Source: Hamiltosporidium tvaerminnensis FI-OER-3-3 (taxonomy: Eukaryota; Fungi; Microsporidia). Taken from it: a DNA stretch of 64,000 bases. The stretch is from the NCBI GenBank assembly GCA_022605425.2, contig JAKIMF020000007.1, forward strand, positions 1,240,001-1,304,000, given 5' to 3'. Positions within the stretch are counted from its first letter, which is position 1, and each line of letters opens with the position of its first letter. The notes under the pieces were generated by a model. The model was not told the DNA's origin. It was given only the letters and a program-made list of their open reading frames with translations, and did not search any database. Position numbers and translations under genes: made by a program. Shown here piece after piece: positions 15,404 to 47,300 of this stretch.

Positions 15404-16029
15404 TATTTATGTAGCTTATTTAATTCACTTTTACCGTTTTCCTAAATTAATTTAAATCTAAATACCACATTTCTCTTCTGATTAATTTAAATAAAAGTTA
15501 AAATTACTTAAATTCGTTTTTATTTTTTTATGTTAAACTTACAAAACCTTTTAAATTTTGATTTATTATTTTATAGCTATATTGTTTTTTTGTTCGAATT
15601 TCTATTCATTGACTATGAATATAAGGATGTATATTTTTTTTAAGGTTTATATTTCATCAATTATACTTTTCGTTAAAAAATTATTCTGTATATATTGATA
15701 ATTAGGATGGTTTTATAATTACCTCGATCCATTGCATTTATTTGACAATCTTATTTTCCATTTATTTTTATTATTTATACAAGTTTATAGTAGAAACCAG
15801 TAATATAAACTATAATTATAAAGCTAGTTCTCTTGGTTTTTATTATTTAAGAAATATCATATATTTTTCAAATAGTGGTTTGTATATATTGTTTTTATTA
15901 TACTCGTGCGTTCTGGATTTGACATAGTTATATTTTCTCGATATTGATTCGTAATTCTTAAGAAAACTACAGCTTAAAGCTTTCGATCGACGGTTGTAAA
16001 GAGCATATTAGAAAGACGAAGTAGTGGCT

Positions 16030-16385
16030 CGGATTAAGTTAAGGTAATTGCTTGAATTTTGATTGGGTGAAACCCATATAAGCCTCGGATAAAAGCAACG
16101 TTTCTACTTACTCTACACTTACCGAACCAAATATACTTCAATTTTAAATATATCTCGGCGGCTTATATGAGGTATTTATACCTTGATAAGCATACCAACG
16201 GATATAAGCTGCTATTTGCATCACCGGCTTTATCTAAAGTATATTTTTTGCATCGAAGGCGCCACGTCTTCTGACTCGAGTGATCAGAGCCATGTTTCTA
16301 TGCTTTTACATGTAATTGCCATAAGGTTAGCTGGGGTTTCTAATCTGGTTAAAAGGAAAACTACAGGCTAGGTTTGTAGAAAATG
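16030..16385 (-). mobile_element. Diverged internal copy of the structured-RNA retroposon
   Basis: ctacttactctacactt, cataccaac, gtcttctgactcgagtga, atgcttttacatg and aatctggtta...aaaactaca match the reverse complement of ~33920-34290. Confidence 0.8.
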
Positions 16386-19300
16386 CTTCCTAATATGTAG
16401 ATATTTATTTGTATAGACAAGTTTCCATAGATAAACTAAAAAGTTAGTATTATTTTCATGCCACTGAAAAATAATAAATGACTTTAACATCGATTACATC
16501 TAATCATTGCCAATCATATGTTTGCTGTGGCATACCCCATACCAAAAAGTTATTAATATATATAGAGCTAATTCTAAAACTAGATTAAACAGAAAGTAAA
16601 AAATAAATGTTTTTTATCTGAACCTTTCGTACACTTAGAGCTGTGATTTCTTTTGTATATTCATATTCCAGAGGGAATATATTTAGTATACTACGAGTAA
16701 AATTTTATATCAAGGTAAAAACAATTGTGATAAACATGAAATTGAATACAAAATTTTTTTTAAATTTTTAGAAATTCACCTTCCAGAATGAATTTACATC
16801 AGAAATGGTGGTATTTTAAAGTAGCGAATCTTATATACATCAAAAATGGTAGGGTATATACACAGATGTGGACAATATCATAAAAGAAGCAATAATGAAA
16901 GATGACAAGGCAGCCGTAGTCTAATTTTTTTTCCTATATACATCTTTCATTTCTTATTTATAAAGTTAATGCACTAGAAAATCATAAAAAAATACTGCGA
17001 GTTTGAGCGGAAACGAATCGAAATATTTGTTAAACGTGTCTAGATTATCTGCTATTGAAAGCATTTTATAAAATTCGGATGATTATTCCAAATTATACAT
17101 AGGAATGAATATAGTTATGTTGGTTGATATGAAGAAATACACAACAGATAATGCAAGGTTTGATGTATTCTACACATTTCGAATATAAATATTTCAATAT
17201 AAATCATGGGATTATTACAGCGAAATCCGGCAGCTGGTGTTGGCAAGCGTTTGAAAATATAATTTCTCGAAAGGGGAACCTTTTATCCGCAAATAATAAC
17301 GATAATAGCTATAAACGAAATAATAAAGCAATTACGACATTACCTGCATTTTTGGAATAGCCAAAAACATAATATTCAAGGACAGATTAAGAGAAACGAT
17401 CTGACTATTATACGCAGATCTGCTAAAAATTTAAGAATGTGTCGCTGAAAAGTTTGGTCGGATGTATATAAGAAAAGCGTGCTTACTTGTTTAGCATTTA
17501 AACCAAGAGCAGAGTAACTAAAAAAATTCTGATGGTGTATTTAGACGATTATCGGCAAAAAAAGCTATTAAATATGGAAACGATGCAATTTATAAGAATA
17601 TTTTTCAATCTTTGAATTAAAGGAATATTTGAAAAACAAATCAAAGCATAAAAATTATATTCGATGAAGATTAAATAGATATCGAGCATAAATTAACTAA
17701 TAAAATCAATATTTATAACAATAGTACTTTGACATCGAGACAAATATGTGTGTATACCAAAATGATACGGGTATATACTCTTTTCTTTTAAAATTGATTC
17801 GGGCGACTTAGATTCTTTTTAGAGAAATTTTGATAGCAATTAAAAAAACAGAGGAGCAAATTCTTGTTTTTACAAAGAAAGCTTTGTAAATTTGTCGCTT
17901 AAAGTGAAAGAGATAGCCTTCACCTTAATACTACGGTAAAATATCATTATTTTAAAAAATAGTATTTAAAAGGTACCATTCTGATAAATACTTTTCTTGG
18001 CAATAGAATGGACAATTAAAAGCCCATTTTTTAATAGCCATTATTTATATCTTAAAAGTAATATTCGGCATATTTTTTCATTTAAATTATTTATGGATTC
18101 TTTTTATATTTTTCTTCTTATTTGAAGTTATTAAAATTAAAAAGTTGAAAAAATAAGAAATCAGATGAAAATAGTCAAAGAGAAAAATTAGAGTGCAAAA
18201 TAAATTTATTTGTTTAGAGTTGATCTAATTTTTCCTTTTTAGGACTGGCCTGTTAAAAAATTTGTGGTTGTGGAATAAGAAATGAATATAGAATGAATCT
18301 AACAATATTTTTTCTAAAATTTTACTGGATTATAAATCCATAGGGTGCAGTTAAAATGATTATAATCAAAATTTAAACTCTAAAAATCAATTATCTTTAA
18401 ATGAGATATTCTATATAATAGGGGAAATGTATGGAATTGGAAACAAAAATTTGCAAGAAAAACAGCCATATATAATATATTTCATCTTTTATTTAATAGA
18501 AATTCCTTAATATAAAAATTTTATGAAATTTAATCTGTGGTTGTATAAAATACAATACATGTAATCTAAAAACAACAAAGATATTTTTTACATATTAAGA
18601 AAGACTTAATCGACAAAAAAAGGAAATAACTATAAATTATTTTTGCCACTAAAACCTGCTCATAATTATTAGACTTTGTATGTTGTGTATAAGAAGGATG
18701 TGTGTTTGAATGAATTCTTGAGCAAAAAAAAATCAGAATATCGCTATAACACTTCATTTTTTGCTTAATTCGGCAATTTAAAATTTTCTATTCTGCATAC
18801 TTCATATAATGAGAATGTAAACTGTTAATAGTGAAATCAAAAACTTTATTTAAAATTTGTCTTACTATAAAATTAATTTATTAAACGAATATCTTGGTCA
18901 AGTTCTATCTATAAAGCAAATATGTTCTCTCCTTTCTACGTTTTTATATTTATTAATTTGCAAGACACTATTTGAACGAGTAATTCGTCTTTCTGAGGTT
19001 TTTTTTGGGGAAAAGCTGGCAGGAAAAAGGTTTATCAAAAGAATTTTACAAAATTGAAATATTCGAAACATTTTTTAATTAATTTTAAAAATTATACTCA
19101 AAGTTTTTCTTTCTAAATGCCAAGAAACAATAAAATATCTCGATATTGTAAATCTGCTAAAAATAGAAAAAAAATCCATCAAAATACCAAAGTACTATAA
19201 AACCTATTCCTGCTTTCCTTATTACTCCCATTCGCTTTACACCTGCTAATTTTTTTATTGTTGAAGTTATATTTCTTTCCAAAACTGAAAAGTGTGATTC

Positions 19301-22310: not shown

Positions 22311-25300
22311 TTAAAAACATTTTCACTCTGTTATAGATTTTCTTCTACCTCGTTAATTCACAAATATTTCCCCTAAAACCTAGTCTTATTTTATATTTAT
22401 AGTTCTTTCTGTAATGGGGGATTTATCTGAGATAATTTACAAATTATTTCTCATTTCGGATGTTTGGCACCATCCTCAATGTTACTCGCTTGTTTTAAAA
22501 AGGGTTTGTCTCTCAATCATCTCGGCTCCTTTAATAACAACTATTAACGCTTTTACTAAGCTTCAGTCGGCATTTCGTTCTGGCTAAAGTCCTTTTGTTC
22601 GATCGAAAAAATTTTCTTGACTTATATGTGAGTAGAATATATTGTATAGGCCCCTTCTCTTGATCGCATTTGAGATTTTTTGTAAGCGTGGCTTATTGTA
22701 TTTTGTTACAATGTGTCGAAGGCCATCACATAAAGAATTATCCGAAGTATAATTTGTCAATAAGCTCCAAATATTCTGCATTAGGGTGATACTTCCTAAG
22801 TTTTCTATTTAAAATATTTTAAGCGAGTTATGCGGAGTTATTCCTACTCTAATGAAAGTTATTTTATTCTATCATTCCCTTAAAATGAATAAATATGTTC
22901 TATTATACATAATTGAAGAATTTTTTACATTAATATTTGCTCTGATTTATGCATACTCGTTTTCATGAATTTATTTAACTTAGTGACTTCTAATTTATTT
23001 TCTAGGTTACAAATTAAGTCTGTTTGAGAATATAGTTAATATTTTCGTACAGTTTCATTATGCATTCTGGTATAATCATGTTTAAGTATTTTTTAGCATT
23101 GATTTGCTAATTTTCAAGTTTTTTATTGAATAAAAAATGTCATGAGACATACCTTCTGCTCTCCAGAAAACATTTTAATATAATTAAAATACATTCCTTC
23201 ATTCATCATTGGCACTACAGCCCTGTGCGAGTTTTGGCCTCCCTTAGTAATACTGCTTACCTGTATTTTTCCAGTGGGTTTGTTTACTTATCGGGTTTCG
23301 TAACAAGGTCGTTTTAAAAGGTGGGTTGTTAATCCTACGCCCAACATGAAGGATCAGTCCCTTTTAGTCGCCTCTTACGACAAGTTGAGAATACTCCAAG
23401 CCAATTCTGCACCCGGAATGGTGAGAAAAATTAAAAATATAACTTCCTTATAATGTGGCCTATTATTTCTTTTCTATAGATACTTAAGAGTCGCTAGCAC
23501 TTGAGAGCTTATATTCTTACAATATATGATTTTAAGTCGAGTTTTCGTTTTCCATTCTGTGATTATAATTTACTATGCAAGTTTCTTCTGATTTCTTTTA
23601 TATAGCTTTTTCGTCTAATTTTTTTTTTCTCTTTACGAAGACTTTTATGGGTGCAAGATCTATTTTATTAGTATTTTTTATATTGAGATTTATACTTTTC
23701 TCGGTTTAATTTCTTTACCTTTTTCAAACAATTCAAGGGTTGTAAATAAATATTTTTTCCTCAAAGTTCAATCTATGTTAAGCATCTCTCAAGTGATGTT
23801 CGCGAGGGATAAAAATAATCTAAACATTTTTAAAGAAATTAACGCTTATTTTTTTTATAAAAACTGTACTTAAAGCATCATCTGACTTAAGAAGTACTAT
23901 CATTTTAACAAAAATTCACATGTATGATAGTTTCGTATGATATTGCTTTTTGATTAATGGTTTGACAAAATTTCCCCGGTTAAATTTTGTTCGGCTAATT
24001 TTTATACTCGTTTATATGTTTGATCTGTACTTCATCAAAAAACCCGAATGTTCAGATTTATCATCCATCGTCTATTTTTTCAAAAAATAGGCATACTCTT
24101 AGCCACACAGTTTCTTTATGAGAAAATTCTCGGTGTAAATTTAATATTCTATGTTGTTTTGGGCTTTTTTACCTCTTAGTAATCTGTTTTAATGGTTCTC
24201 TTTCTTACAAGAAGCTTGAGATCATCAATAAAAGAGAGAAGATTATTCGACGATGATTCCGAATGTTTTTGTATTGTCACCTTAGCTATTTTTCATCCCG
24301 ATTTCGGCTTAATTGATCCATAAATAACCTCGAAAAACAATGGTGGCAAATCATTTATTTGTAATATTTTTCTTCTAGTCTTGTTGTTCAGATACTTGCT
24401 GGTCCTCTGACATAAAAATTTTCTTTTTTTAGATTTTTCATAGATAAATTTCATAATTAAACCAGTTAAACATAAGTTTAAAAGTTAGTGTGTTTAATAA
24501 GCATGATAAGTTCAAGCATAAGCCTTTTTTGGCTTCGATTTTGATACTTTATAGGTTTTAATTCATTCTTCATTACGAGAAACATTTAAGTGAGCTTCTA
24601 TTCGTCTTTCCATACACCCCCACGTTAAAAATTAATATCTGATAGTTTAATTCGTCTTTAGTGTTTAAACTGAACGATCTTTGTAACATACTTTGTCGTC
24701 AGCAGGTAGAAATTCGAAATACAGCCAATTTCTCTATACGCAGAACCCTTTTTAATGGGTCTTTAAGAAATAGAATACGAAGCATCGTAATTATATAGGT
24801 CTAACCGTGTCGTTCCTTCTAAAACTTATTTTCACATATCAAATAGTATATAAAGGCTTATAAGATTTTGGATCATAAGATTTTATATGCTTTCATCTCC
24901 GCCATTAAGAAGCCAAATGAAAATTTCTAGAACTCGTCAGTGAATAGACTGTGTTCGATGGATACCTGATTTAAAAGCATCAAATACTTATCATACGAAA
25001 AAACCTAGAATTTCTTTTACAATAAAGGCTAAAAACTTATAGTTAAATCAAAATAACCATATGCTCACGATATTCATGCATAGAAGACCGACGCCTAAAT
25101 TCCTCCATGAATAGTTCAAGATTACGATTCTTTCTTTGTAATGTTTTTAACTTCTATACATTGTAATTTGTTTCCATTAGACATTAAAAGTCCTTTTCTT
25201 CTCAACTGAAGACTCGTAAGATTAGTTACACTGCCAAAGTTCAAATTAAAATCTCTTCCGGTTTTTATTATGTAATTGTGTCATTGAATCGTCGAGTTTT

Positions 25301-25719
25301 TTGTCTATAGGCTTTCTTAAAGAGATCCTAAAGAGTCAAACTGCGAGATTTCACTCTCTATACTTTCCTTCCGAGTTATTAAGGTTTCTATTTACGTGTT
25401 AACTCGTCATAGCATACCTAACGCACCGTATAATCCCCCCTGCTTCAGTTATAGCATTTCTTTTATGCTGTTCGGCAAGTTCAAAGTAATCAATCTATTT
25501 AGTTCAAAACCTTGCTATCCACCTGTTTATTATCAAATTTCAAGTTTAGACATCTATATCTAATATTTTGATATTCGAGATTTCTTTGATAATATTATAA
25601 AACCAATCTCTTAGGTTTATGCTTTCATTAGTGTCGGGCGAAGAAAATTTCTCGGTGTGAAAGGTTTCGATGCAATCACATTAGTTCTCATTTTACCTAA
25701 TTTTATTTTCGGTCTCCAT
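22311..25719 (-). mobile_element. Near full-length degenerate non-LTR retrotransposon, RT plus restriction-like endonuclease (R4/R2-type)
   Basis: Broken minus-strand frames give, in order: LPPLFF..FMDQLSR, FIDDLKLL (RT catalytic, ~24210-24233), YPSRTSLERCL, HDYTRMHNE, NEYA.IR, ITFIRVGIT..SL, LRKY, YVMAFD.IVTKY. The 3' end aligns with 30845-30900. Candidate ATG at 25719; a GC-richer putative 5' UTR extends to ~26090. Confidence 0.8.
23192..23426 (-). mobile_element. Short non-autonomous RTE-derived (bipartite 5'+3') retroposon nested in the RLE element
   Basis: Minus strand carries cttGTCGtaagagGCGACtaaaaggg (motif I recall from RTE 5' UTRs) and ends ggaggccaaaactcgcacagggctgtagtgcc-aatgatgaatgaag (RTE-type 3' end plus microsatellite tail). 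Flanked by imperfect aattaaaa(a)ta repeats; second copy at ~59905. Confidence 0.75.
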
Positions 25720-30624: not shown

Positions 30625-30860
30625 TTAAATTAAAATGTCAAAACAAGAAATAAAAACAAAATCTTTGATTAAATAAACTGTAGAATGAAAATAAATTAGT
30701 ATTAAAAAAAAAAACTGAATTAAAAAACAAAACTGAATTAAAAAACAAAATTAAACAGCAGAATTAAAAAACAAAATCTTTAATCAAATAGACAGTAAAA
30801 TTAAAATAAATCCATATTAAAAATTAGATTAAAAAACAAAATTATTTAATAAAATTCTGG
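30625..30860 (-). repeat. AT-rich repetitive block, probably the 3' UTR of the RLE element; related block at 31580-31860
   Basis: Directly follows the element stop codon; shares taaaatgtc.aaacaagaaataaaaacaaaat, taaataaactgtagaat and aaaatctttaatcaaatagaca with 31580-31860. Confidence 0.75.
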
Positions 30861-30861
30861 G

Positions 30862-31579
30862 CTAAAATATTTTTACCATTTTTGATATGTTTTCTTCTAC
30901 TTCTTTTGTCTCTTCTTCCAAATCCGACTCTTTATTTTTGTTCTTGGTCGGTTCCTCTAAAGTGGTTCCTCCTTGTGAAATAAAGGGTGCTTTATTTTTC
31001 GGTTTAAATTTTTTTGCACCATCTTCCTCTCTCTTCTCTTCTTTTAAAGGGGGTGTTGGTTCCTCGTGCATCTCTGCTCTCATAATAACACCCATTGACG
31101 CTCTCTCCCAGCTCTCTTCAGCATTTAGTCCTGACTCAAGTCCTATTCTTCGATAAAAAGAAATTGTTTCGACTATCTTCTTAAGTAATATCGACTGAAC
31201 GTATGCCTCTACATTCATGGGTATTTCTAGTCTTTTAAGATGAGATTTATGTATTTTGTCACAATACCGTCCCAGGTCATCACATATGGGATTATCTCAT
31301 CACTACACTTATAAATAAGGCCCAACTCATTGGCTAGCTAGTCATACTTCCTAAGTTTTTCAGTTTCAACTATTTGAAGTGAATCTTAGGAAGTGATTCC
31401 CACTTCAATGAGTGAAATATTATTCTTCTTCATATCTAAAAAATATGTCGGGTCTGTTATTCCGAATTTTAACATCAGTTTTTATTCTGGTGTCCACTCT
31501 TATCTCCGCATACTCATTATCAAGAATTTCTTGAACTGAGTGACTCCTAATTCGTTTTGAGGACTTAAACTTTACCTAT
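30862..31579 (-). mobile_element. Young 5'-truncated RLE non-LTR retrotransposon copy (endonuclease domain plus C-terminus)
   Basis: Minus strand: FKSSKRIRSHSVQEILDNEYAEIRVDTRIKTDVKIRNNRPDIF..ISLIEVGITS*DSLQIVETEKLRKYD*LANELG..IIPYVMTWDGIVTKY, continuing into the 118-aa ORF. RPD...IEV...K..KY is the PD-(D/E)xK RLE signature. Confidence 0.9.
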
Positions 31580-33071: not shown

Positions 33072-33401
33072 CTACTTATCCAAATGCTTGGTGACAAGAC
33101 TTTCAAATACATTAACATCTTTATATCCAAGCAGCAAATCTATCTGCTTACCTTCAGCTGTAACAACCAAAAGTGCAGGAATATTTCTTATTTTGTACTC
33201 AACAGCAAGTTCAGACACTTTATCAATATCTATTTCATACAGATTTACAGGAATTGGTAAACTGTATCTTTCTAATTCTTTACTCATTGTATTACACGGA
33301 CCACACCAGGTAGCATACATCTTGACAAACCCTATTGTGTTGTTTTTCTTGAGAATATCGAAATATTGCTCTTTGGATTCTATTTGGATGTGTCTTAACA
33401 T
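33072..33401 (-). CDS. Thioredoxin
   Basis: YATWCGPC active site, EIDID, YKIRNIP cis-Pro loop, 109 aa, CCCC upstream. Confidence 0.93.
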   Translation of the reverse strand: MLRHIQIESKEQYFDILKKNNTIGFVKMYATWCGPCNTMSKELERYSLPIPVNLYEIDIDKVSELAVEYKIRNIPALLVVTAEGKQIDLLLGYKDVNVFESLVTKHLDK

Positions 33402-33507
33402 TTTAAGGGGTGGAGAATAATAATATAATATTTTTTTTAGGAATTGTATTAATATTTAGAATTGGTTAAGAAATGATTATTTTTTTTATCTATTTATTGG
33501 TGATTAT

Positions 33508-33709
33508 CAACGAACTCCGGGCAACTGCCTCGCCTATTATTTAGGTTCTACACATCTGGTAGATGAAAGGCTTTGGGACTTAGGTATCGCATGGGTTACC
33601 GATGGAGTGTTGGGGTAGCAGTCATGTATGCTAAACCTAGAACTGCGTTAATGTCATGAAAACAAATATAAAACTTGCCACTTTTTAAAAAAGATGTGAT
33701 ATTTATAAA
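33508..33709 (+). mobile_element. 5'-truncated (202 bp) young copy of the structured-RNA retroposon with 13-bp TSD
   Basis: Matches ~34263-34465; flanked by perfect tattggtgattat at 33495-33507 and 33710-33722. Confidence 0.92.
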
Positions 33710-33740
33710 TATTGGTGATTATAGTTTTTAATTAATAATT

Positions 33741-34469
33741 GGTGGAGGGAGGATAACCACATAAAAAACTTTCTGCTTGGCAATGAGTGTGTGAAACTGT
33801 TGTGAGATCATTGTTTGGATTTTTGGTGGGAATTAACCACACTACATCTTCGGTTGTTCCATGGGAGTTGTTATGAAGAGGAGAGGTCTAAGAAATGGAG
33901 AAACTTTTTCTACAAATTTATTTGTAGTTTTTTATGTAACCTGATTGCAGACCGCAGCTGAACATGTAGGTAATTGCCATGTAAAAGCATGGAAACCTAA
34001 CCTTGCTCACTCGGGTTAGAAGACTTAGCGCCTGGGAGATATAAAAATAAAACCCATTAAAAGCCGGGAGAGCTAAGTAGCAGGTTATACCTGTTGGTAT
34101 GACATTGCACTGTCTAGGTGGACCCCATGTAAGTCTCTGAAATATATGTTGGCTAGAAGTTTATTGGGTTCAGAAAGTGTAGAGTAAGTGGGAATGCTGC
34201 ATAGTCTTGGGGGAGCCCAGGGGGGGCTTCGGCCTTCGATCACACTCCATGCAACGGACATTAACGAACTCCGGGCAACTGCCTCGCCTATTAAATTAGG
34301 TTCTACACACCTGGTAGATGAAAGGCTTTGGGACGTAGGTATCGCAGGGGTTACCGATGGAGTGTTGGGGTAGCAGTTATTTATGTTAAACCTAGAACTG
34401 CGTTAATGTCATAAAAACAAATATAACACTTGCCACTATTGTAAAAAGATGTGATATTTTTAAATAAAG
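33741..34469 (+). mobile_element. Apparently full-length (~730 bp) young copy of a non-coding structured-RNA retroposon (SINE-like) with 13-bp TSD
   Basis: Flanked by perfect ttaattaataatt at 33728-33740 and 34470-34482; GC-enriched versus flanks; no credible ORF; many hairpins; four other copies in the window. Confidence 0.9.
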
Positions 34470-34487
34470 TTAATTAATAATTATATT

Positions 34488-34612
34488 TGTAGATTTATTT
34501 TAGATATATTTTGTGTTTATTATTAATTATATTTGTAGAATTTATTTTAGATATATTTTAGATATATTTTAGATATATTTTTAGATAATTTTTGGATTTA
34601 TTTTGGATATTT
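34488..34612. repeat. Degenerate 11-bp tandem repeat (ttttagatata)
   Basis: Consecutive tagatatattt units at ~34540-34590 plus a duplicated taattatatttgtaga block. Confidence 0.75.
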
Positions 34613-44350: not shown

Positions 44351-47300
44351 GCTTTTTAATTCTTTAAATGAGCTTCGTATTGGATTCGATAAGATATTCC
44401 TTATTACCAATCTATTAAACTTATTTCTTTGTAGAAGCAATGTTTTATCTTGGCAAACCGAGTCGTTTGAACTGATTTCTCTTTGTTCATATTCTTGCAA
44501 ATCTCTAATGAAATTTCATTGCTGTCTCTAACATCAATCAAAACTGTTCTATATTTTATAAAGAGCTTAGGATGTGCAATGATAGAAACCCTAGATGTAG
44601 ATTTAGAAACCGAATCAGTATTTGTTGCAACTTTGTGATCTCTAATTAAGTTTCCAACCAAAAAATCCTTACAATACACTAAAATCAAATAAGAAAGGCG
44701 ATTTTACCCCATATTCTTCTTTATGTCTACTCTTTTATGATCCTTAAAAATCTTTCTGATATAACAATTTACAATCTTTGATACATACCTCATACCATGT
44801 CAGGATTAATCATATTAGTTAGCGATTTCCATACTTTGATCCAAATATGTATTTTCGATGAAATAAAAGGCTTTTAAACAAAAAAATTTGCCTTGCACCG
44901 GTTCTTTACTGTTTCTTATATAATCTTCGACAGAGTTTGAAATTTCTACCTGCACACCTCTCCTTATTTCACATTTATGTCAGCAAGACATCCCTTCTTT
45001 TACACTTTAAGTTGAAAGATATTTGTTACATAAATTGTCGTTTATCTGTAGAAACTTTGTATATAAGTGCTTTCTACATACTAAGAGATTTTCGGAAGAT
45101 GTCTTTTGTATCAAATACTTAAAGCCAGTAAAATAAATCAGACCGAGGTGTTTTTTTTTGAAAAATACAACTTGCACAATATCATCAAATCTTTGTAAAG
45201 AGCTGAAAGTATTATTATGAAAGAATTTTGAATAAAATTTATTTTAGCGGGTATCATGTTAGATAGTAAATGATAATACTAATTAATCTATCCAGCCAAT
45301 AAAACATAATTTGATCAGTTTTTGAAAAAAATATAAGCATATGATAATCGTATATGGCCTTTCATCGTTACATTTTAAACCAAAAATACTTTTCATCTGA
45401 TAATTTTGATCCTAAGATTGCAAACTTATAGATAACAACTCATTAAAAGCACAATTTTGCAGCTTTGAAATCCGATTCCCTTTTAGGAATTTCTTCGATG
45501 AACAAACTCGAATTCCTTTTCTGGCAGCCTTATAGGACTCATCCTTCTTCACCAAAGCATTAGAACGATAATTTTTATGGCTTAAGCTAAAATTAATTGT
45601 CGGATAATTTTTTTAAGGTTGTTTGCTTCTAAAAAAATTTATCTGCCTAAAAGATTCTCAAGCAACTTTCTAGTATTACTGAATTGAAAATATACCTCTG
45701 ATACTTTCATTTCTAACGAATGCTTTTTTTTGCGAGTTTTTTCGTCATTGTCCTGTACAACATGAATAATGCACTTACCATTATTTATTGGTAACAGCCC
45801 ATGCTATGTAGAGTATCACAAACCCCACTGGATAAAAGCCGTTAGAAATTTACTGGCTATGCCTTTACCCGTAAGCTATTGAGCTCAAACCACCCCTTCA
45901 TCAATAAACTTAACAGAAAGTTTCCTGATATTATATGATTTATCTTCTTTCAAGTTACTCTTTTTTGCAGTTTTTGTTTAAAAATTGAGGCCAGGGATAA
46001 AGAGAAGATCTTATTTCGCTCTTTTCTTCTTTCTTCCGCTTTGATCTTCGCATACTATTAAATATTTTTACCACCAACATTTTAGAAACAAAAACCAATT
46101 TCTTCTAGAGATCTTAATCCGAGACCAAGGTTTTCTATGTATTTTTTCAAATCTATTGCATACTCCTAGATGCATAGGATACCTCCATTCTTGATTTACA
46201 TCCTCGACAGAACTAGTATTGCACGTAAAACAATTACTTGGCTTCCTTCTGTAATGACTGCAGCACTGCAAATTGCCATATAATTGGCTATTCAACAGAA
46301 ACAGAATTCGGGCTAGAGAATGTAGATGGTTTGGAAAGGACAAATATATTATTCTAAGAACATCGAATTAGGGGATAATGCGTAAATTAAGCATGGATTA
46401 TGTGGTCTTTAGAATAATTTAAGGAATCCGAAGGCCGACTTTATCTTTCTTAAACCATTTTCTGGGAGAAAACCGCAATTATTTCTATGACTTAAATTTT
46501 TTCTATAAGAATATTTCATTTTACTCCTTCAATAATCATTAACTGCTCTTAATACATAAAAAATAGCAACGATATCTCATTTATACAATTTTATACACCA
46601 CAGAAATACATCGGATACAATAGATTAATCTATTCTATAACCAATACAAACTCGTAAGTTATGTTGACAACAGATTCAAAACATATAACATAGTAAATTG
46701 AAACAGCATGAGTTGAATAAATATTTATGATTTTAAAAATTCTAAAAAGTCGCAAAAAATATTCACCGAAGTACGAATTAAGCATTTAAATCCATTTTTA
46801 AAAAATAAACTAAAAAATTTCAGAATTTATTCTTTATTATTAATTTATTGTAATTATATCGTTTTTAATTTGCTGACTAATTTCAGAATATCGTTAAGCT
46901 AATTAACTAATTTATTTATAAATGATAAAAAATTTGTTTCAGATTGAAAATGAATACATCACGATTAAGAGCCTTTTTTTAACTAATCTTTGAACAAACT
47001 ATAATTTTTTAAAATCCAGTTTGATTATAGTAATGATAAGCATATCAGGTATTATATTTTTCGTTAAAACAACTCCCGACGCGTTTTAAAAGAGAAAAGT
47101 TAGGAGAAAGAAAATGCAACTGTTAACAAGTTACAGTCATAATAAGCCCTTCAAACCAATGCTTAAATGATAATCTTAAAAACAAAGCATTTCCATAACG
47201 AGAAGTAGGCGTGTCCAAGCGTGAGGTTTTTGGTTTTTAAATCCCTACCGAGATATCTTTAAATGGTATCTATAAACAATAATCTATTTCTATAAATTAC

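Follow-up and report, generated by a model that had tools for sequence, protein, structure and literature searches.

A 729-nt non-coding repeat in the genome of the microsporidian Hamiltosporidium tvaerminnensis FI-OER-3-3 can be explained as a SINE-like non-autonomous non-LTR retroposon, likely driven by a resident LINE of the RLE type, and we put the probability of this reading at about 0.75. The copy under study lies in a stretch of 64,000 nucleotides (contig JAKIMF020000007.1, positions 1,240,001 to 1,304,000 of the forward strand), the whole of which is called the window in what follows, and coordinates given without a locus name refer to it. An earlier note on this DNA had seen here a candidate new class of mobile element, namely a non-coding and highly structured RNA that retrotransposes. 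The non-autonomous, non-coding retroposon of that description is borne out by ORFs of at most 61 aa, by TSDs and by intact 3' ends, whereas the new class is not: because the terminal TTAAATAAA and the TSD range match those of a resident RLE-type LINE, the anatomy is that of a SINE-like partner of such a LINE, a kind known from Entamoeba (PMC2996970). The best available reading is that of a SINE-like retroposon which lacks a head and has an RLE LINE as its partner. It does not constitute a class of its own, and a high degree of structure is not demonstrable for it.

The repeat family and its age

The assembly examined consists of 17 contigs with 21,638,905 bases, in which the SSU rRNA model of Microsporidia is matched over its whole length at five loci (1208 bits, 1303 nt). 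Within the window, blastn identifies a complete copy of the interspersed repeat and the following relatives:

33741..34469, plus strand: full-length 729-nt copy of the young subfamily, used as the 100% reference; more than 40 relatives at 97-100% identity; no ORF longer than 61 aa
33508..33709 (blastn 33506-33711), plus strand: 5'-truncated independent copy, element ~520-726, 92.8% identity, with its own 13-bp TSD
3676..4235, minus strand: old copy found by blastn, element 150-729, 79% identity, without recognisable TSD
16095..16389, minus strand: old degraded copy, element 160-460 at 71%
15843-15926: second piece of the degraded 16095-16389 copy, element 642-727, 76%
1903..2249, plus strand: a very old copy or a related one, in two segments, 1903-1995 (element 6-96, 71%) and 2116-2249 (element 239-376, 77%)

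At least five copies had been claimed in the window; of the five listed, three stand, namely the full, the truncated and the old 79% copy, while the other two are matched only piecewise. For the one placed at 1898-2589 the matches are limited to the two short segments listed last, and that placed at 16030-16385 is an old degraded relative to which the separate piece at 15843-15926 belongs. The best genomic relatives of the copy at 3676-4235 are members of the main family at 80-82%.

At the genome level, the copies that match the element over its full length at 97-100% identity number more than 40, and the best 40 matches in the 21.6-Mb assembly are all full-length. For the first 28 nt of the element, with up to two mismatches allowed, there are 473 occurrences, and for a 28-mer close to its 3' end 535, with balanced strands; the reversed patterns used as controls for both 28-mers give 0 occurrences. 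Well-preserved copies amount to about 500 or more, that is at least about 1.7% of the genome, and there are many older copies besides; in 360 kb of fetched DNA, further full-length copies were found at 95, 93, 90, 87, 81, 74 and 70% identity. The element is G-rich and has 42% GC in a genome of about 26% GC.

Copies that are 98-99% identical indicate that the family was recently active. The 30 best copies differ from their own consensus by 1.4% on average, and the young copies have in common about 19 polymorphic sites that are combined in many mosaic haplotypes, which suggests that several source copies were active. The older copies (70-93% identity) are each nearest to the young consensus; they are singletons decayed independently, with a 3.3-fold G/C to A/T bias per site, and subfamilies were not found among the older copies sampled. 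An older state is shared at about 15 sites, for example T701/C717 and the cluster at 308-331, so the source lineage itself has evolved. Element positions 701 and 717 (window 34441 and 34457) are perfectly linked, G/T being the state of 20 young copies and T/C that of 10. Since C717 is found in all 12 of the older full-length copies compared (87-95%) and T701 in 9 of them, the window copy represents a derived subfamily.

Junctions and mode of insertion

Both plus-strand copies in the middle of the window are flanked by direct repeats of their own:

33728..33740: 5' TSD TTAATTAATAATT of the full-length copy, 13 bp; the identical 13-mer follows the element
34470..34482: 3' TSD TTAATTAATAATT of the full-length copy, 13 bp
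33495-33507 and 33710-33722: 13-bp TSD TATTGGTGATTAT of the truncated copy at 33508-33709

The truncated copy was inserted 5 bp upstream of the target site of the full one. When 30 full-length copies from the genome were oriented, about 25 had clear direct TSDs of 10-17 bp that abut the ends of the element. Between the 3' end (...TTTTTAAATAAAG) and the TSD there are 2-12 extra nucleotides in about 12 of the 30, the nucleotide preceding GTGGAGGG at the element start varies (G, A or T), and in three copies the first ~22 nt are repeated in tandem, one to three times. Insertion just upstream of start codons was not seen among the 30. The termini read GTGG...AAATAAA(G), with AATAAA at the very 3' end, and are devoid of TG..CA ends and of terminal inverted repeats, in agreement with the earlier statement that LTRs and TIRs are lacking. 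Those partial copies that have a defined end retain the 3' end (element 520-726, 648-728 and 358-729, in the window and at L025 and L026), and 5' truncation is real but confined to a minority, as seen from the genome-wide counts of 473 and 535 for the 5' and 3'-region 28-mers.

Variable TSDs, filler nucleotides and 5' truncation with intact 3' ends are the signatures of target-primed reverse transcription in non-LTR elements. The view that the element is a retroposon inserting in this way, proposed at first from TSDs and 5' truncation in the window, is therefore supported by the 10-17 bp TSDs, the intact 3' ends, the junction filler and the occasional truncation.

Some junctions are of more complex form. 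The ~22-nt start GTGGAGGGAGGATAACCACATA is tandemly duplicated at the 5' junctions of L016, L021 and L028, and at L064:2221-2269 an inverted 49-nt 5' fragment lies 42 nt upstream of a full copy; such 5' tandem duplications and the inverted fragment may be products of template jumping or twin priming during reverse transcription.

Coding capacity and transcription

Neither strand of the element has an ORF of more than 61 aa, and hence there is no coding capacity for an RT or an endonuclease, which confirms that no credible ORF is present. A tRNA was not found in the window by ARAGORN, no family of Rfam 15 reaches its gathering threshold over the window, and even at E<=10 the interval 33400-34600 gives nothing relevant, the best E-value being 0.3 for unrelated bacterial and plant families. 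The absence of a recognisable tRNA, 5S or 7SL head, noticed earlier by eye, is thus found by these searches as well, whereas the suggested ribozyme or IRES-like domain corresponds to no Rfam family. A self-cleaving ribozyme or a known structured RNA was accordingly rejected, as no covariance model of Rfam 15 attains its gathering score.

Words resembling the A and B boxes deviate from them at two positions, lie a long way from the 5' end and are not arranged as a head. Runs of T stand in the plus strand at element positions 80 (T5), 166 (T5) and 189 (T6); in an alignment of 28 copies the latter two never vary, and the first is kept in at least 90%. As RNA polymerase III would stop at such internal runs, a classical pol III SINE is unlikely; the canonical form, which has a tRNA, 7SL or 5S head and is free of internal T5-T6 terminators, was rejected. 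The invariant runs and the missing head would make Pol II the more likely polymerase. As to transcripts, two RNA runs in which the organism is not shown to be present gave zero reads, and two other runs were DNA-like, with short high-depth repeat contigs.

A candidate partner LINE

Because the element has no RT of its own, it needs a LINE. A search of the genome for RVT_1 yielded at least 150 RT matches among 466 first-look candidates, dozens of them with open frames of about 1255 aa. The most abundant intact RT family among those sampled is a LINE whose full copies are about 3.8 kb long with 38.6% GC (reference copy L041:3491-7296 on G000:C12; present at over 100 further loci). It has a single ORF of ~1256 aa and a 3' UTR of ~45 nt, and its copies begin at the ATG or a few nucleotides from it (ATGGGTAGA), leaving essentially no 5' UTR. 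In the protein, RVT_1 at residues 507-746 is the sole Pfam match, the RT is similar to those of L1 ORF2 and R2 in PDB, and behind the RT stand a CCHC motif CQHCGKSGKTVDHLATRC at residue 979 and RPDIFILD...LIEVG at 1064. The predicted order of RT, CCHC and PD...E endonuclease motif, without an APE domain, is that of RLE-type LINEs such as R2, R4 and NeSL, and judging from the many intact frames of about 1255 aa the LINE is probably still active. In the window, the LINE and its shared terminus are represented as follows:

34461..34469, plus strand: 3'-terminal TTAAATAAA(G) of the element, contains AATAAA, shared with the LINE 3' terminus
30842..31579, minus strand: 5'-truncated LINE copy, its 3' 752 nt at 91.8%, ending in TTAAATAA (blastn and tblastn against L041)
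22460-25419 and 44756-45629, minus strand: older LINE fragments

The element ends in ...GATATTTTTAAATAAA(G), and its terminal nonamer TTAAATAAA is common to the 3' terminus of the LINE, of which at least three diverged subfamilies end in ...AAC[C/T]CAGAATTTTATTAAATAAA, including TTAAATAAA. In the rest of the window, the background of this 9-mer is 1.9e-4 per position. The last 40 nt of the element agree with the LINE no better than random 40-mers do (P about 0.12), and in a blastn comparison of the element with 20 RT-bearing loci no similarity was found beyond the terminal 9 nt, apart from one inserted copy of the element. TSDs of 8-16 bp, some with filler, flank the six full LINE copies inspected. 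From the short shared tail, the equal TSD ranges and the co-abundance of the two families, with some of the LINE families sampled, a partnership of LINE and element is the best available inference.

In the proposed course of events, source copies would give rise to a non-coding plus-strand transcript of 729 nt, more likely made by Pol II; the RT/endonuclease protein of the resident 3.8-kb LINE would capture this RNA in trans, and target-primed reverse transcription at AT-rich sites would copy it into the genome. TSDs of 10-17 bp, occasional 5' truncation, a variable first nucleotide, untemplated 3' filler and sometimes a ~22-nt 5' tandem duplication would be the products, and the shared 3' terminus UUAAAUAAA is probably involved in recognition.

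Mobilisation by a different autonomous retroelement, such as a LINE whose GC-rich 3' UTR is followed by an (ATTTT)n tail, is rather improbable. There are several RT families in the genome, of which some were sampled, and what the element has in common with the 3.8-kb LINE does not go beyond 9 terminal nucleotides; however, the other RT loci sampled (L031-L040, L048 and L049) have no similarity to the element at all, and the 3.8-kb LINE is both the most abundant intact family and the one whose TSDs of 8-16 bp match. An element with the tail in question is found at L049 (G000:C1:616414-626413, minus strand), with a 1195-aa ORF, a GC-rich 3' UTR of ~170 nt and (ATTTT)n; it is unrelated to the 729-nt element, which ends differently and has no simple-repeat tail.

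RNA structure and the origin of the sequence

The elements of folding that had been pointed out in the plus strand are present. CTTCGG stands at 33848-33853 and 34227-34232 as described, and the adjacent hairpins CTTGGG-GGAG-CCCAGG and GGGGGC-TTCG-GCCTTC are contained in both the MFE and the centroid fold. What is not supported is the dense helicity of the whole. Dinucleotide shuffles give an MFE of -193.8 +/- 6.8 kcal/mol; the plus strand, with -201.8 kcal/mol, lies at z -1.17, and 3 of 20 shuffles do equally well. The minus strand reaches z -2.0 against shuffles over the whole element. Along the young consensus, z in windows of 120 nt varies between +1.4 and -2.2, and the folding z-scores of the whole element and of sliding windows are not significant on either strand. 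The element looks helical by eye because it is G-rich with 42% GC within a genome of 26% GC. The 3'-terminal ends of element and LINE are both AU-rich and weakly folded (z -1.2 to +0.9), and the idea that the G701T/T717C changes strengthen a 3' hairpin was dropped for this weak folding.

RNAalifold on 28 copies (12 young, 16 at 70-95%) returns a covariation term of +0.16, that is no net support. An excess of covariation against shuffled columns (29 double changes vs 6.3) was discarded as confounded by unequal divergence and relatedness and by the choice of the structure on the same alignment. In a non-circular test, the structure was taken from the young consensus only and scored on the older copies against random column pairs with the same consensus bases. 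On the plus strand, single changes preserve pairing at a rate of 0.41 vs 0.35 in controls (16 of 1000 controls as high) and double changes at 0.57 vs 0.47 (53 of 1000 as high), while on the minus strand there is no such signal (0.30 vs 0.30 for singles, 0.45 vs 0.46 for doubles). This result hints weakly at the plus strand as the functional RNA, with certain helices of importance to the source lineage, but it does not speak for an exceptional fold. The earlier claim that this strand is the RNA is likely to be right in view of the 3'-anchored polarity of truncation together with this weak plus-only substitution signal.

It is conceivable, if unlikely, that the 729-nt body is a constrained and partly folded plus-strand RNA. 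This would be an ncRNA of the host, or else a new RNA domain able to recruit the protein of the RLE LINE despite having no sequence homology with that LINE. The source sequence has stayed nearly constant at 42% GC against a strong mutation bias toward AT, while copies have decayed by up to 30%. If so, it would be the first SINE-type element described in Microsporidia, with an unusual recognition by structure or by a 9-nt tail only.

A reading in which the copies are retro-pseudogenes of one GC-rich host ncRNA gene of ~730 nt, copied by the LINE and not themselves sources, seems to us rather improbable. It would agree with a GC content far above that of the genome, as in a constrained functional RNA, with old copies each nearest to the young consensus, as expected of a slowly changing source, and with the pair-preserving excess of the plus strand. 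Yet no Rfam family matches even at E<=10, the mosaic of about 19 polymorphic sites suggests several active sources, and the roughly 15 sites with an older state show a source that evolved like a SINE master; moreover, high GC is a feature of retroelements in this genome, as the partner LINE also has 38.6%.

A categorically new element, whose folded RNA (ribozyme, IRES-like or self-priming) drives its own retrotransposition, is very improbable. Stable hairpins including GGGGGC-UUCG-GCCUUC and the preservation of plus-strand pairs above controls speak for it, but the folding energies no better than dinucleotide shuffles, the covariation term, the lack of a ribozyme or any other Rfam match, the dependence of an element without RT on a LINE whose TSD size and 3' terminus it matches, and the same design in Entamoeba SINEs (PMC2996970) all speak against it. 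Scarcely credible, and refuted by the junctions, is a reading as a solo LTR or as a DNA element of the MITE or Helitron type. One could cite for it the 207-bp direct repeat (33506-33711 and 34260-34466) around ~550 bp as a pair of LTRs, but the two repeats are independent insertions with a 13-bp TSD each, TSD length varies over 10-17 bp with filler, where a solo LTR would have a fixed 4-6 bp, the ends GTGG...AAATAAA(G) are neither TG..CA nor inverted repeats, and truncation is always from the 5' side.

Comparison with known systems

For the SINE-like retroposon with its RLE LINE, the closest known analogue is the EhSINE/EhLINE pair of Entamoeba. EhSINE1, EhSINE2 and EhSINE3 of Entamoeba histolytica are about 500-650 bp long, non-coding, abundant and flanked by TSDs, and are mobilised by EhLINEs (PMC2996970, PMC2657916). 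Like them, the element described here is a long non-coding retroposon without plausible ORF, present in hundreds of copies in the AT-rich genome of a parasite, with variable TSDs and, in some copies, short tandem repeats near the 5' end; in both systems the partner LINE, here a candidate, has a C-terminal restriction-like endonuclease, predicted in the present case, and the 3' terminus agrees with that of the LINE, here over a nonamer. There are also clear differences. EhSINE1 shares ~70 bp of 3' sequence with EhLINE1 and its RNA is abundant and polyadenylated, whereas here only the terminal 9 nt are shared and the RNA is a predicted one; EhLINEs have two ORFs in 4.8 kb, whereas the LINE here has one 1256-aa ORF in 3.8 kb and essentially no 5' UTR; and the host is a microsporidian, of the fungal lineage, instead of an amoebozoan.

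Other known types are less close. Common SINEs with tRNA, 7SL or 5S heads (Alu, B2, SINE3) are likewise non-autonomous, use LINE-dependent target-primed reverse transcription, have TSDs, are mostly full-length and show a pattern of masters and subfamilies, but the present element lacks a pol III head and an A-rich or simple-repeat tail, contains three T5-T6 runs and is 2-5 times longer. The SIDEs of Drosophila are internally deleted R2/R1 derivatives with both the 5' and the 3' end of the LINE and an HDV-like ribozyme. They resemble the element in being non-autonomous and in depending on an RLE-type LINE protein that recognises the 3' end of the RNA, and differ in that the element has neither blastn similarity to the body or UTRs of the LINE nor a ribozyme match; the reading as a SIDE or an internally deleted LINE was rejected on the blastn comparison with the 20 RT-bearing loci, one inserted copy aside. 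In trypanosomatids, RIME, NARTc and SIDER are non-coding retroposons of ~260-550 nt mobilised by the ingi and L1Tc LINEs, being deletion derivatives that share a 5' signature with the LINE. They too are non-coding retroposons in a protist parasite with a resident LINE, while neither the 5' end nor the body of our element resembles the LINE.

Novelty and significance

Large microsporidian genomes consist mostly of unexplained repeats. That of H. tvaerminnensis was described with 17 contigs, 21.64 Mb, an N50 of 1.44 Mb and 26.6% GC, and with 39.6% interspersed repeats, of which the 'other' category makes 25.45% of the genome (PMC10542269). The word SINE is absent from two surveys of microsporidian TEs (PMC4202319, PMC7313128), and literature searches gave no description of a SINE in a microsporidian and none that joins Hamiltosporidium with SINE. 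The family, which accounts for the share of the genome given above, appears to be undescribed so far and is probably hidden among the 'other repeats'. Repeat annotation would gain if it were named as a LINE-dependent non-coding retroposon, and insertion-polymorphism markers would become available for studies of Hamiltosporidium/Daphnia co-evolution; a case from the fungal lineage would also be added to the head-less, probably pol II-type SINEs with RLE LINEs that are best known from Entamoeba.

Genomic surroundings of the copies

Copies of the element often lie less than 1 kb from a copy of different age, as in the flanks of L010, L015, L029, L057, L063 and L064, and about 10 extra copies were met in ~90 kb of flanks vs about 1 per 20 kb genome-wide. 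Such neighbourhood of copies of differing age suggests clustering or preferred target regions. An identical insertion with its 17-bp TSD and flanks is found in opposite orientation on two contigs, at L003 (G000:C16:142170-145897) and L004 (G000:C3:1431314-1435041), which suggests a segmental duplication that includes the element and is perhaps subtelomeric. At L043 (3300-3490 and 7295-7480), a LINE copy lies inside a minisatellite with units of ~16 bp (AATAGGGATTATAAAT-like); just upstream of this minisatellite-borne copy stands a fragment, GTGGAGGGAGGATAA, beyond which the likeness to the 729-nt element is lost; this fragment may belong to a related family with a common 5' head.
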